Shown here piece by piece: positions 81 to 6,481 of a stretch of 64,000 nt of DNA. The position numbers and the translations under genes were made by a program. How positions within the stretch are numbered: position 1 is the stretch's first letter; each line of letters begins with the position of its first letter. The stretch spans positions 473,954 through 537,953 of the forward strand of contig CAJFCJ010000013.1 of the NCBI GenBank assembly GCA_904063045.1, in the 5' to 3' direction. Below the pieces are notes generated by a model. That model was not told the origin of the DNA and made no database searches. It was given only the letters and a program-made list of their open reading frames with translations. The stretch comes from Dimorphilus gyrociliatus (Eukaryota; Animalia; Annelida).

Positions 81-1440
81 CCTTACAGAGTGGGCACTTA
101 TTATTTAGCGCCCGGTCCCACCTCACTTGGCCAGGTAGAGAAATAATTGGTGATCAGGTACCCGAGGAGTTACTTTCGCATGGATTACAGGTATTATTTA
201 TTTGTAGTTACTATTTAGACGATTGTAAATTGTTCTATACTACTTTACACGGGTGTACACTTGTACCTGATTTTTCCCTTTTCCCCGTCATTTAAATATC
301 CCTGTAAACATGGTACAGATATAATTATGCATAGGAATCTAGTTAATATTCTACCTATAGAGAGGAGAGAAAGAAAAAAAGAGTGGAAAAGAAAGATTGA
401 GATAGATAAATAGATAGATAGATAGATAGATAGATGGATTGATTAATATTAGATAGATATATAGCATAGATAGAATGGTAAGTATAAAGAGAGAGAGAGA
501 GAGAGAGAAAGAGAGGCAAAAGAAGTAGAAAAAATAGCATCTGTATAAGTAATTAAGTAATGGAGATTAGTTTAAGCCAAAAAAAATGAATGTATATATT
601 TTTTTCAGGGAGAAAATCCCATATGAAAAGTGATATATAGAGTATTTCGTAAAAATAAATGTATAAATTAATACCTTCTATCAAAAATTCATGTATTATT
701 TGAAAGGTTTGTCTTTTAATATCCCACAGATTGATCCTGAAGTCTATGAAAAAGCAGTTGGGACTCTTATGTCTAGTTTAAAAATTAAGTGCCATTTATG
801 CTTTTTCTCAACACCAGCTGCGGCAATATTCTTTATTGTCTGGTTCATATTCTGCCTCACACTAATACCTTTCATAGAAATTAAAGTGATTCTCTACGGA
901 CAGACTAGTAGCGGCCTTGAATACGTACACGGTGCTCTTGTTTGGCTTTGTACACTCACATTATATTTGTTCGTAAGTCACCTCGTCAAAAGACAGGTAA
1001 GATTAACCATTTAGAAAGCTTCCCTTACCAAAATAAGTTCCTTTCTTTACATTCATATATACAATATTCACTGTATATGCAAACATAAATAGACTATATA
1101 TAGTAAATAAAGCATGCAACTTTTCTCTCCCTCTCTGTTATGATTCTTTCTCGAGGTTTCTTTTTTCTTCTTCTTCTTCTTTTGATAGAGTACTCTAAAG
1201 CACTTTACTATTTGTCCTTATACACATTTAATTTATATCCAATACTAACAGATATATACAATATATATATATATATAAAGCACTTGTAGAAATGTTTGTA
1301 TATTTGTTTTATCTTTTCAGCTTCGAAAACAATTAAAAAAGACCATTTCAAGCGTCAATTCAATATTTATCAAACAGAATGTACTTTTGGGTAGTGAGGA
1401 GTTAGGCCTAATAGACTGCAACAAGTATTACGTATCCTTT

Positions 1441-1476
<36 letters not shown>

Positions 1477-3655
1477 TACTAGTAATAATCCCTTATAATG
1501 TTTTTTTACTATCTATAATCTTTTATCTCCGTAACTGCAATTAAAACGGGTAGAGGAGTGAGAGCAGGGTATCTTGATTATAAATTATTAGCTTTACCGT
1601 AGTCTATAATTCTTTGCAGGGCATTATTTTTCGTTTGTTCATCAAGTCTTTTATTAATTAATTCCATTTGCCACGCTTCTGCCCTCATATTACGGCCGAC
1701 TGATGAACATGTAATAGAACTTTTTCTACTATTATCTTCTTCTGGTTTGGTAGCAATTTTTACTGTCTTTTCAATACGAATTGGTGGTTCTTGATCTATT
1801 TTATAGTGTACATCATTTGCATCATCTACGTAATTTTCATGTTCTATTGAGGGTCTTTTATGCAATCTCTCCCTTTTTACTTCTTCTTTTTCTTCTGGGG
1901 ACAAAATATAGTCATTATCACCATCTGTTCTGGACGCAAAGTCCTCATCTCCATCGTCGAATGTTGCTATTTTAACTCTAGTTCGAGAGGGACTAGGCTT
2001 AAAGATATCGTTTTTACCAGGTTGAACCATTCTAGGTACATAGTCAAATACATCAACCTATAGAGTATAAAAAATTAAGTATATTTGCTCGAGAATATTA
2101 AATAGAATACTAACATCGTTCATTTCATCCATCATTCGCTTTTCATATATATCGGGATACAATTTCTTTAGACAATTTTTTCTCAGTCTATTAATAGGTT
2201 GTACTCTTAATGATCGGCTCGGTAGCTTTAATTGGTCACTTTTTTGCTTTTCAATAGTCCATTTAAACATGAGAACTGCATTGGAAAAAAAATCATGTAA
2301 CTGTCCATAAAGTTATTTGTCGATACCATTAGCGGCCATTTTGTTACTATGACAATAGTACAAACAATTAAGCCTAGTTTCGATTTGGGATCTATTTTTT
2401 TTTGGGGGAATATAGAGTAGACGGAATATATAATATATTTCCTAATTATGAAATTCTCTTACCTTTCCTTATCCCATATTTCCATTCCTGCTACTTTCCT
2501 TTTCACTTATCCTGAATACTTTTCAACGCTTAATATCTCTCATAAAAAGAGAATCATACTCATTAGGATTATTTTTCGTTCATTAGAATACAAAAAAGAG
2601 AAAATATTCCTTTTTTCTTGTTAATTAAAATCAAATTTATTCATTCATTCATTCACTACCTACTGACGAATATATAGGGTATTCACTCATTCATTCATTT
2701 ATCCATCCATTTATCCATCCATCCATCCATATATCTATTTGTCTGTCTATCTATCTATCCATACATACATACATACATTCGCACATTCATTACCTGTACC
2801 ATTGTTATATCCTTTTCATAGCTCTTTTTCTTTTCTATACGTTACAAACACTAACAAACCATGTAAACAGGCACAAAAACGAAATACTCTCATATTTTTC
2901 ATTATCATTATTTTTTTCCCTTATATTTTTATCCTCTAATCATTTACTTTTTGCAACGACACTCAGGTTCATAATAAATTTCTTCAGGGTTATTCCAACT
3001 TCTTTTACCGGGACCATTCCAATCAGCTGCCTGTTTCAGGGCTTAAATAGAACAGCTTTATTAAAGCTTAATTATTATTTTTCTCTTTTTTTTTACATAG
3101 AAATAGACTTTATCATTTTTTTAAAATTATAAATTCTTTTCATTCGAGAATAGGCCTACCGAATAATTTAGCTCCAACGCTTGAGGGAGAGCGTAGCCTA
3201 GCATGAATAAGAAAAATTGAATAAATATGTATTATGCAAAAATTTTTCTATTAATAAATGATAATAAGATATTTATTATTAGTTATTTGACAAACTCACT
3301 TCATGTAATGCATTTCGATTTCTTTGACGATATCCTTCAGAATTGTATTAGTTCCATCCTTTTTTAAACTTTCCACCCTTGATTAGGAAAAGATGCCATA
3401 TATGGATAAAAGACATTTACATAATTGAAAATGCACTTTGGTCAAATTTTTTCGTTTTTTTGTATTAAAATTTTTTTTTTTTTGATTTAGGTTTCGTTGG
3501 CGGCTTTCATCTTTCTTTCTCAAATGTAACGAAATAGGGACACTATAAGAGCTTAGAATAATCTTGGAGCTTTATTAATAAAACTTACTTTTTATAATTA
3601 AACGAAAAATGGAATTAATATATTTGAAAGGTATAAAAAATTTCATTTATTCATT

Positions 3656-3695
<40 letters not shown>

Positions 3696-4406
3696 GAGGA
3701 GAGAGGGGGAAGGGAGAAAAAATAAAACAGAGAAAAATAAATGAGATATCCTTTAGAACTTACATTGTACTTGGTCTTATTAAAATTACTAGCCAACAGC
3801 CATATAGATAAATAAGTAATCTTCCATTCATTCTTGAACGAATTAACAGGATCGTTTGACTCTTATCAGTCTAGTGTCTCAACTTTAAAGAAAACCAAAT
3901 CGGGCTGATTTATTATAATAATTTGATGCTAATTGAAAGCCTCTTCTCATTAGCAAATTTTTTTGTTAAATGACAAAAAAATTCTGTCTTTTTCTTTTGT
4001 TTTCCTTAATATCTAATTTAAATAGTTACACTTTTTCTACTACGAAATTGGACCTTGTCTGGTAAGCAATTCTCTTTTCTTGTCAGTTTCTTACTTAAAA
4101 AAAGTTTTTTTTAAGGCTTACTATCAAGAAATACTGTCTAAAAAGCATAACTCTTTCGCCAACCCAACTTTTAACGCGGAAGAAGATCTATCTGCTTCAT
4201 CCTCAATGACAACCTGTCTGTCGGATATTGTTATCAAAGAAGATCTGTCCGAAGAAACGGAAGACAAACTACTATCTTATAGCGCCGAGTACACGAGTCT
4301 ACTGATAAATAGGAACTTTTCATTTGATCACTCAAATTTACATTGTATAGGATTTCCGTGCCTTTGTCAGTTCGCGCAGCATAAAAACAATATTCGATCT
4401 AAATAG
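81..4406 (+). CDS. TMEM268: TMEM268-like membrane protein, 5'-partial; exons ~81-190, 730-997, 1321-1431, 4026-4061, 4116-4406
   Basis: GT-AG exons splice in frame: LQSGHLLF..ELLSHGLQ|IDPEVYEK..two hydrophobic helices..|LRKQLKKTISSVNSIFIKQNVLLG|LHFFYYEIGPCL|..LLSYSAEYTSLL..FPCLCQF. These track recalled human TMEM268 blocks (LHNGQVL, RHRVLLG, LWFVYFDLENC, IPCPCQL). Confidence 0.8.
361..530. repeat. Compound microsatellite (GA)n/(GATA)n in TMEM268 intron
   Basis: Runs of gatagatagata and gagagagaga are directly visible. Confidence 0.9.
1578..2339 (-). CDS. Uncharacterised ~217-aa hydrophilic protein nested antisense in TMEM268 intron 3; exons 2339-2327, 2275-2115, 2057-1578
   Basis: The ATG sits in a caaaATGGcc context, the introns are ~50-57 nt GT-AG with matching phases, and they join ORFs 2058..2270 and 1578..2030 (MAANVLMFKWTIEK..DEMND|VDVFDYVPRMVQPGK..YGKANNL). 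Confidence 0.7.
2640..2780. repeat. Compound tetranucleotide microsatellite (TCAT/TCCA/TCTA/CATA)
   Basis: Tandem tetramers are directly visible. Confidence 0.85.
2944..3831 (-). CDS. DH31: DH31 (calcitonin-family diuretic hormone 31) neuropeptide precursor nested antisense in TMEM268 intron 3; exons 3831-3764, ~3551-3421, 3377-3300, 3197-3160, 3041-2944
   Basis: Exon 1 encodes a signal peptide MNGRLLIYLYGCWLVILIRPST followed by a GTAAGT donor. Exons 3-5 splice in phase to VESLKKDGTNTILKDIVKEIEMHYMK|LRSPSSVGAKLF|ALKQAADWNGP-GKR-SWNNPEEIYYEPECRCKK*. The amidated C-terminus matches the annelid DH31 ending SVGSKLRALKQAADWNGPamide as I recall it. Exon 2 needs a 1-nt correction in an A-run. Confidence 0.85.
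3660..3715. repeat. (GA)n microsatellite in DH31 intron 1
   Basis: About 16 GA units followed by a purine tract. Confidence 0.9.
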
Positions 4407-4532
4407 GAACTTCTTGGAATCTGTATTTCCCATTTATTTAAAGGTAAAATAAAATTCAATTTTTAGTTAAAAAGTATATCAAAGCACATTTTGTTTTAAT
4501 GTCGGGAAATTCAGAAAAAATCTCTCTTCCTT

Positions 4533-5880
4533 TTAAAATAGATAAACGATCAAGAGGAAGGCGGAAATGAAACCGAAGAAAACGTTTACTTTATTTACGG
4601 CTGCAGAATTTACTGCAAAAAAAAAAAGAAAATCATTATACCTAATACATTATTAATTGTATGTAAATAATATACAGAATATATACAAATTAATTGCTAC
4701 CTACCAATAAATTCAATTTTAAAATTAGCTTCTTTCTCCTCATTGTTCTCTAGAACAACCTTTATAGTCATCTTAATCTCACCCTCTAAATCTGCTTCAT
4801 CAGAAAAGCTAATATCACCAGTATAATTACGCGTGCCACTATTATCTTCGATTTTTAAACCAACTCCGTAATTGGTGTTGCCGCAAGTAACGCTATTCTT
4901 ATCGTTTCCCCATATCAAGGCCGTTTCATTGCAATCGATATCTGCAGTTGTGCGGATACTGCACGGTAACGTCACATGTCCTGGCTTAAACGCTTTAATC
5001 GAATAATTTTTACAACTCAAATGAATTTGGGAAGTGATGCCTGCAACATCAGTATTCTGTTCCTCCGAAGGCTCCGTTGTGGCCACAGTTTCTGTTACTT
5101 TTGTTGATTCGATAGCTTTTTCCGTACTTGGAGTTAAGTTACCCTGTTTAGGCTCGACGGTTGATATTTTGCTATCAAGATTCGATTGTGTAGATGATGA
5201 CTCAACTCCAACAGATGAAGTGGTCAAATTTTCTGAAATATCGAATGTTTTTACAGTGACAGTATCCTCCGCAGTGTTGTTGGTTGTGCTGGTAGTGACA
5301 GTATTATCTGCAATAGTATTGGTTGTATTGACAGCGGTCTCATTGATAGAAGTTTTAGAATCTGCCACTGTTGGAGCTTGATTCGTTGTTCTATCATTCG
5401 CTGTTGAATCTTGTAACTTGGAAGTTGTTGTTTGCTTATTATCTTCTTCGGTAGAAGTGGAAATTTTCTTGGAAGTTTGCAAACTAGCTGTACCAGTCGT
5501 TTGCGCTGTTGGTTCTTTTGTGCTCTTATCAGTCTCTGAAGTAGTTGAAGGTGACTTCGTTGTTGAGAGACCTTCTGAAGTAACAGCCGTATTTCCTCCA
5601 ACGGTAGTAGTAGCTTCGGCTGCATCTCCTACAATATTTTAGAATATAGCAATTTATTACAACATATGAAAAATAGAAAAGTCGTTTTCATACCTTTCAC
5701 ATCATCATTGTTTAATTTTGCAGCTGTAGATGTAATTGTAGTTTCTTGACCTGTAAAAAAGACAAGATTGATAGTCACTTCTATAATCATTTTCGCTCTT
5801 AAAAACAATTTACCTGTGACGAATAGCACAGTCATATGACAGAGAACTGCTACAAGAAAACATCTCTTCGACATCATCAT
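4533..5880 (-). CDS. Secreted, predicted GPI-anchored mucin-like protein (~375 aa) with a Cys-containing Ig-like domain; exons 5880-5814, 5750-5694, 5628-4705, 4612-4533
   Basis: Signal peptide MMMSKRCFLVAVLCHMTVLFVTG, ~200-aa Thr/Ser-rich region, 4-Cys beta domain (VTLPCSI..LIWG) and terminal exon VNSAAVNKVNVFFGFISAFLLIVYLF* typical of a GPI signal. All three introns are phase 1 GT-AG. Confidence 0.75.
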
Positions 5881-6481
5881 TGTTAAAGCTTAAGAATTTA
5901 CCGCTTCCTCTGAAACAACACGATGTTCCGAAAAAACGTTTGCAACTGTTTAAATCTATGCTTAACCACCTATAAGAAGACTTTTTATGGAAGCAACTAC
6001 TCAATTTGAGTAAATACTATTCAAAGTTTTCCACGTCGGCAAGTGCAACTCAGTATATGCCTACGTTTTCCCTACAAAAATATCCAACTTGTTTGTGCAT
6101 TTAATATTATGTAGAAAACTCTTATTTATCCTTAAAAGAAACAATATACTATATATATACACAGTATATATATTGTATAGAAGAAATACTAGGAGGAAAA
6201 TAAACGGTCTTGGGTCAAGGGTACCATACTATATATTTATATATCCGAATGTAATATTTATTCAAAAATTGACAATGTTTAATTTTTAAAACATCAAACA
6301 TTATTTTCTAAAAAGCTTTTTATCTTTAATAAGTAAAAAAAAAAAACAAAAAAGAATACTCAAAATTTTAATCAATCAAAGGCAAGACAGTTAGGTGATA
6401 AATTAGCAATAATCATAAGTACTGTCGCTGTTTTGTCTTCAGCTTCAGTTCAAAGTTCTTGGAGAGAACTATGTTTTTCAA

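Follow-up and report, generated by a model that had tools for sequence, protein, structure and literature searches.

We describe the genomic locus of a DH31-family neuropeptide precursor in the annelid Dimorphilus gyrociliatus (formerly Dinophilus). It lies on the minus strand of a 64,000-nucleotide (nt) stretch of contig CAJFCJ010000013.1 (assembly GCA_904063045.1), which we call the window, and our analysis supports its being an expressed gene of four exons, paralogous to the canonical DH31 gene of the same species. The precursor was already known, as the spliced product is identical over 93/93 residues to the published D. gyrociliatus 'DH31-like 2' (string comparison). What we add is the locus, the exon structure with its RNA-supported junctions and the annotation gap, together with a reading of the unusual N-terminus as an exon-3 deletion, an orthologue under purifying selection and a conserved antisense nesting. 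Judged from the comparison with its paralogue, the DH31-like 2 peptide is evolutionarily truncated, not extended, and we predict, with a probability of roughly 60%, that its main product is a 43-residue amide (DGTNT...AADWNGP-amide) released by cleavage at KK and GKR.

The coding sequence runs from an ATG at 3831 to a TAA ending at 2944 through four minus-strand exons of 68/78/38/98 nt, separated by three introns that all have GT..AG ends, and the joined exons form a 282-nt open reading frame (ORF) for a precursor of 93 amino acids (aa; Table 1). With fewer than 45 codons apiece, the exons had no entries in the ORF list, as an earlier reading of this DNA from its letters (the sequence-only reading) had pointed out. 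That reading had proposed a five-exon minus-strand gene; its strand and coordinates held, but we found four coding exons. Splicing was assessed in the contigs of one independent public sequencing run (X1), of unlabelled kind, placed on window positions 400-6000. Because these contigs bear splice joints, the run behaves as RNA. They skip 3042-3159, 3198-3299 and 3378-3763 exactly, the CT..AC ends on the + strand marking minus-strand introns, and bin depths agree with spliced coverage, intron 3 being nearly empty. The junctions 3300/3197 and 3160/3041, which the sequence-only reading had named as the test of minus-strand splicing, are thus both present. A fifth coding exon was considered and rejected: no minus-strand intron within 3832-4060 was seen in the RNA contigs, and the four exons make up the complete coding sequence.

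In the literature the precursor appears as Locus_13284.0_Transcript_1 in Supplementary file 5 of Martín-Durán et al. 2021 (PMC7854359) and was reused by Thiel et al. 2021 (PMC8557429). Its entry has no DgyrP gene-model id and no genome-guided Trinity id (PMC7854359), and the published lists remark on a 'strongly extended N-terminus' while giving no locus, exon structure, orthologue or origin of that N-terminus (PMC7854359, PMC8557429). The public annotation of GCA_904063045.1 calls no gene model at its place (L001 4509-5396). Described beforehand as hidden, the gene is indeed hidden from the annotation, but its precursor was already in print.

Family membership is carried by pairwise BLASTP, in which DH31-like 2 matches the DH31 precursors of Capitella (E 2.5e-12) and Platynereis (E 1.4e-11) and the D. 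gyrociliatus paralogue DH31-like 1 (E 6e-7); with the identity to the published precursor, these matches bear out the similarity to DH31/calcitonin precursors that had been proposed. When the Platynereis precursor was searched against the 64-kb window by tblastn, the sole match was exon 4 (3042-2983, E 2e-5), and residues 62-72 (ALKQAADWNGP) are the same in Platynereis and Capitella DH31. The C-terminal half of DH31-like 2 also fits the conserved DH31 pattern [SG].KL.AL..A.....GP. The Platynereis sequence that the sequence-only reading had quoted also agrees with the published ...SVGSKLRALKQAADWNGPGRKRR (supplement file 7, PMC3890597). Exact transcript identity and an omega of ~0.1 rule out a chance ORF. 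A word-indexed protein search with the 93-aa product returned no candidate, even a self-match, which says that the collection is without this protein and says nothing on relatives; the 32-aa exon-4 product, searched exhaustively by HMMER, returned two repetitive unrelated proteins alone, being too short a query to inform; and the string AADWNGP had no match in the indexed full texts of papers, whose supplements, where the sequence sits, fall outside the index.

By direct reading the precursor opens with MNGR, a 14-residue hydrophobic core (LLIYLYGCWLVILI) and RPSTM, a pattern kept in the relative described below. It then passes through ...VESLKK, DGTNTILKDIVKEIEMHYMKLR and SPSSVGAKLFALKQAADWNGP to GKR, the last stretch ending ...SVGAKLFALKQAADWNGP-GKR, and closes with an 18-residue Cys-containing tail, SWNNPEEIYYEPECRCKK. 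Its landmarks are KK at residues 28-29, KLR at 49-51 and ...AADWNGP-G-KR at 66-75, and the Pro-amide-type end (...DWNGP-G-KR, residues 68-75) recurs in the relative, Platynereis and Capitella. Past the putative signal peptide the precursor has just two Cys residues, both in the tail, and none from KK to GKR. DH31-like 2 therefore has no N-terminal Cys-Cys ring, that is, it is DH31-type, whereas the calcitonin-like precursors of D. gyrociliatus have TC..C. Both the ...AADWNGP-G-KR amidation and cleavage site and the CxC of the tail peptide, as claimed from the letters, can be read in the spliced product.

The origin of the N-terminus becomes visible beside DH31-like 1 (DgyrCDS13595 / DgyrP15681), whose protein we threaded onto its own locus to obtain its exon structure. 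The coding exons measure 80/75/74/44 nt in DH31-like 1 against 68/78/38/98 nt in DH31-like 2, the intron phases are 2,2,1 in both, a phase-2 intron of DH31-like 1 stands at the place equivalent to intron 2 of DH31-like 2, and the third intron splits the same Ala codon (KLM/ALKH and KLF/ALKQ, respectively). Common descent of the two genes follows from the four exons, the shared phases and the third intron at an identical codon. The precursors are also alike in having a putative signal peptide, an amphipathic spacer, a basic site opening exon 3 and a ...GP-G-basic end. DH31-like 1 spans 893 bp (L005 3001-3893) and DH31-like 2 spans 888 bp, and the first introns are long in both (443 nt and 386 nt) beside a genome median of 66 bp (PMC7854359).

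Within the peptide region a single structural difference separates the paralogues: exon 3 of DH31-like 2 is exactly 36 nt (12 codons) shorter, its product being (K)LRSPSSVGAKLF(A) against (M)TKRRLDMGYGNRFDLAASIGSKLM(A) in DH31-like 1. On this comparison, KLR and the KRR cleavage site are homologous by position. In our alignment the absent codons are those of the N-terminus xDxGYGxR[FY], conserved from brachiopods and nemerteans to annelids, and MAFFT and BLAST alignments place a gap of 11-15 residues in DH31-like 2 over the motif xD[AM]G[YF]GSR[FYN]. DH31-like 1 retains KRR and the canonical 31-mer (LDMGYGNRFDLAASIGSKLMALKHANDLSGP-amide), whereas DH31-like 2 has KLR and 12 codons fewer; the latter also has the Cys-containing tail of 18 residues and a C-terminus nearer to those of other annelids. 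Taken together, the motif gap, the shorter exon 3 and the change from KRR to KLR argue that the mature peptide is not a canonical DH31. The 12-codon shortening accounts for the remodelled DH31 without a GYG segment that the sequence-only reading had perceived, and DH31-like 2 looks extended because the preceding dibasic site decayed. Neither six-frame reading nor tblastn found a relic of the lost GYGSR segment in intron 2 or elsewhere in the window, so that a mere shift of the acceptor, which would have left the old sequence in the intron, is not supported.

A relative of D. gyrociliatus, reached in the Logan assemblies SRR23372228, SRR23372216 and SRR31984834 through a homologue (P0004) of the neighbouring gene DgyrCDS9363, carries an orthologue of DH31-like 2 at the syntenic site; the two species share gene order, and their ALDH proteins are 80% identical. 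The orthologue has exons of 65/78/38/98 nt with canonical splice sites and the same phases, and its 92-aa product retains KK, KLR, GKR and the CxC tail. Exon 3 is 38 nt in the relative too, and on this comparison its shortening predates the split of the two species. Nei-Gojobori estimates (pS 0.62, near saturation; pN 0.115) give an omega of ~0.10 overall, and DH31-like 2 is under strong purifying selection in both species. The segment D[GE]TNTILKDIVKEIEMHY[ML]KLR (residues 30-51) is identical at 20/22 residues (omega 0.04) and the DH31-like segment of 21 residues at 17/21 (omega 0.03); in the former, TNTILKDIVKEIEMHY is unchanged at 16/16 residues across several synonymous substitutions. Were DH31-like 2 a decaying DH31 duplicate, transcribed without a functional peptide, its loss of the canonical N-terminal motif and dibasic site and its absence both from public gene models and from the list of genome-guided transcripts would fit; but with frame, splice sites and processing sites intact in two species at near-saturated synonymous sites (omega ~0.1), and ALKQAADWNGP unchanged against distant annelids, we regard decay as extremely unlikely. 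The comparison thus recasts the 'strongly extended N-terminus' as a specific evolutionary event, an in-frame loss of 12 codons followed by strong purifying selection.

Intron 1 of DH31-like 2 holds a (CT)n microsatellite (window 3650-3740) that is not conserved in the relative. The ~58 nt adjoining exon 2 (3378-3435, minus strand) are 81% identical between the species, and the remaining intron is unalignable; the conserved 58-nt stretch may be a splicing or regulatory element.

As to the mature peptide, the sequence-only reading had offered a 22-mer cut after LR or a 43-mer cut after KK; the count of 43 is right, but the peptide after LR has 21 residues. We judge the 43-mer most likely because K-L-R is a poor convertase site and because constraint on the helical segment equals or exceeds that on the DH31-like part; this favours the segment's belonging to the bioactive product. 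If KLR were still cut as a monobasic site, the products would be a truncated DH31 amide of 21 residues (SPSSVGAKLFALKQAADWNGP-NH2) and, after trimming, the helical peptide DGTNTILKDIVKEIEMHYMKL. KLR does occupy the first codons of exon 3, at the position of the DH31-like 1 KRR; BLASTP aligns it with the KKR of Capitella; and its K, L and R are kept in the relative along with a His at P6. A basic residue at P6 is one context that permits monobasic cleavage. However, KLR has no basic residue at P2 or P4, which makes it a weak convertase context, one long peptide fits equally well with a helical segment as conserved as the DH31-like part, and the published annotation took the N-terminus as extended. 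We consider cleavage at KLR possible but somewhat unlikely.

Several points nonetheless weigh against the 43-mer. It is a prediction from sequence, and the conserved KLR and P6 His could support monobasic cleavage to the 21-mer. Other calcitonin (CT)/DH31 precursors also conserve amphipathic spacer helices, and conservation of the segment is no proof that it stays attached. Receptor binding is carried over from vertebrate calcitonin-family pharmacology, and an RNA contig runs on into the next gene, so that the 3' end in Table 1 and a monocistronic mRNA can be taken only as probable.

If the 43-mer is nevertheless the product, the prepropeptide would be directed into secretion by a putative N-terminal signal peptide, which would presumably be cleaved off. 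Of the basic sites, those used would probably be KK (28-29) and GKR (73-75), with cleavage after the latter, and Gly73 would be converted to a C-terminal amide on Pro72. By analogy with the calcitonin family, the C-terminal half, a conserved annelid DH31 sequence, could dock on the extracellular domain of a class-B receptor. The N-terminal half does not present the xDxGYGSR[FY] activation motif; the 12-codon loss from exon 3 removed that motif and degraded KRR to KLR, and what was once a separate amphipathic spacer helix probably now forms one peptide with the truncated DH31.

The RNA contigs also reach the downstream neighbour, DgyrCDS9363, whose ORF is a 100% match to NCBI DgyrCDS9363 on CAJFCJ010000013.1. 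Contig record 2 (1652 nt) is made up of 3377-3300, 3197-3160, 3041-2115 and 2057-~1450, and since 78+38+414 = 530 agrees with its offset at 2627, it joins DH31-like 2 exons 2-4 to DgyrCDS9363. The DH31-like 2 ORF could accordingly be imagined as the upstream cistron or a translated upstream ORF of a longer mRNA carrying DgyrCDS9363, not an independent gene, and the annotation pipeline did retain just DgyrCDS9363 at the locus. Yet a contig spanning two genes is no demonstration of a single transcript; contigs cannot show single molecules. An AATAAA lies 303 nt past the DH31-like 2 stop, and ~70 nt past it in the relative; neither operons nor trans-splicing are reported for this genome (PMC7854359); and the 3' untranslated region (UTR) is unconserved between the species, whereas both ORFs are conserved. 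We find such a shared mRNA very unlikely and keep DH31-like 2 as an independent gene; the linkage may be read-through or overlap. It is plausible that the annotation kept DgyrCDS9363 alone because of co-assembly with this longer ORF, and the micro-exons are likely also a reason for its missing DH31-like 2.

The probable 3' UTR contains (GGAT)n/(GATA)n-type repeats (2644-2830) that are not conserved in the relative. DgyrCDS9363 showed no known domain or match in Pfam and Atlas. Its C-terminus, ...GRNMRAEAWQMELINKRL...IIDYGKANNL, is strongly conserved in the relative's 158-aa homologue, which occupies the same place and is 45% identical overall. Farther along, 4697-5877 on the minus strand encodes an annotated 350-aa protein without Pfam match, in which a long stretch rich in Thr and Ser accompanies a C-terminal domain containing Cys; its contig depth is by far the highest in 400-6000, and its C-terminal part is just 37% identical to the relative.

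DH31-like 2 and DgyrCDS9363 lie antisense within a putative ~2.6-kb intron of a + strand host gene, an intron very large beside the genome median. On the + strand, splice joints in the RNA contigs take out 997-1320 and 4062-4115. Host exons 727-996, 1321-1431, 4026-4061 and 4116-4406 are 94, 86, 100 and 87.5% identical (aa) to those of the relative, where they flank the DH31-like 2 orthologue and the DgyrCDS9363 homologue on the opposite strand; the antisense nesting of two genes in the ~2.6-kb intron is therefore conserved. The junction 1431->4026, which adjoins a masked repeat, was not seen in the run X1 contigs. One RNA contig combines the minus-strand intron 3378-3763 with the + strand intron 4062-4115, joining exon 1 through 4061 to host exons, as happens when a strand-blind assembler meets overlapping antisense RNAs. 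It points to overlapping antisense transcripts, the 5' region of DH31-like 2 lying opposite micro-exon 4026-4061 or unspliced host pre-mRNA.

The sequence-only reading had placed the gene antisense inside a TMEM268 intron. The layout is borne out by the + strand flanking exons kept in the relative, but the TMEM268 name rests on weak DUF4481 matches. The last host exon matches Pfam DUF4481 (PF14800, TMEM268 family) over positions 222-292/293 with E 7e-4 and 19 bits against a cut-off of 25, the transmembrane (TM) exon gives a weak Atlas lead (score 0.82) to a cluster with PF14800 in 40% of its members, and the remaining host exons have no match to the TMEM268/DUF4481 family. The annotation of GCA_904063045.1 includes none of the host exons in 727-1431 and 4026-4406. 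Its nearest + strand model (169 aa) stops ~180 bp before the window start, and the public host gene model is probably truncated.

Table 1. Positions in the window of DH31-like 2, its antisense neighbour and the exons of the host gene.
Feature	Position	Strand	Details
Host TM exon	727-996	+	
Host intron	997-1320	+	joint 993->1318 (cut +3), GT..AG
Host exon	1321-1431	+	last host exon upstream of the large intron
DgyrCDS9363	1578-2339	-	217 aa; 57-nt intron 2058-2114; joint 2054->2112 (cut +3)
Probable 3' UTR of DH31-like 2	2620-2943	-	first AATAAA starts 2641 (poly(A)-signal scan); RNA contig coverage continues past
DH31-like 2 exon 4	2944-3041	-	98 nt; (A)LKQAADWNGP, G-K-R at 3001-3009, tail SWNNPEEIYYEPECRCKK, TAA 2944-2946
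DH31-like 2 intron 3	3042-3159	-	118 nt, phase 1; splits Ala codon of KLF/ALKQ; joint 3041->3160, CT..AC
DH31-like 2 exon 3	3160-3197	-	38 nt; (K)LRSPSSVGAKLF(A); R codon of KLR 3191-3193
DH31-like 2 intron 2	3198-3299	-	102 nt, phase 2; joint 3196->3299 (cut +1), CT..AC
DH31-like 2 exon 2	3300-3377	-	78 nt; (M)VESLKKDGTNTILKDIVKEIEMHYM(K); dibasic KK at 3359-3364 and strictly conserved amphipathic segment
DH31-like 2 intron 1	3378-3763	-	386 nt, phase 2; joint 3376->3763 (cut +1), CT..AC on + strand
DH31-like 2 exon 1	3764-3831	-	68 nt; MNGRLLIYLYGCWLVILIRPST and two bases of Met23; putative signal-peptide region; ends phase 2; ATG 3831, donor GTAAGT at 3763, junction 3764/3377 in RNA contig
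Host micro-exon	4026-4061	+	first host exon downstream of the large intron
Host intron	4062-4115	+	joint 4060->4115 (cut +1), GT..AG
Host last exon	4116-4406	+	includes stop

The main value of these results is curatorial, in that the public gene set of a reference annelid lacks a neuropeptide gene that is both expressed and conserved. Beyond this, DH31-like 2 offers, in an animal that is small and tractable, a natural experiment on the two-domain model of how calcitonin/DH31-type peptides bind. By analogy, it could be a maintained, gene-encoded 'headless' DH31 that opposes DH31-like 1 at the class-B DH31 receptor, either as an endogenous antagonist competing with it or as a biased ligand; alternatively, the rhodopsin-type 'DH31 receptor 2' lineage could have it as its dedicated ligand. 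We consider either role unlikely and put them forward as speculation. Natural gene-encoded antagonists of class-B G-protein-coupled receptors have, to our knowledge, not been described. The rhodopsin-type DH31 receptor 2 lineage is treated in PMC8557429.

Among known systems, one comparison is with other annelid DH31 precursors. That of Platynereis ends ...KRR-IDAGYGSRYAAGASVGSKLRALKQAADWNGP-GRKRR (Conzelmann et al. 2013, PMC3890597), and the Platynereis peptide, the sole deorphanised DH31 in PMC8557429, activates a class-B DH31 receptor at nanomolar concentrations. Platynereis (PMC3890597) and Capitella teleta (ELU08670.1) have an upstream amphipathic spacer and an acidic tail in common with DH31-like 2, and over SVG[SA]KL.ALKQAADWNGPG the D. 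gyrociliatus peptide is identical to that of Platynereis at 17/19 residues. In both of these annelids, however, KRR or KKKRR is followed by [IF]DAGYGSRY... to give a 31-mer, a segment absent from DH31-like 2. A second comparison is with CGRP(8-37) and salmon calcitonin(8-32), N-terminally truncated calcitonin-family fragments of laboratory or proteolytic origin that are competitive antagonists. Like them, DH31-like 2 has a presumed receptor-binding C-terminal half without the activating N-terminus; unlike them, it owes its truncation to the gene itself and may carry a new helix at the N-terminus.

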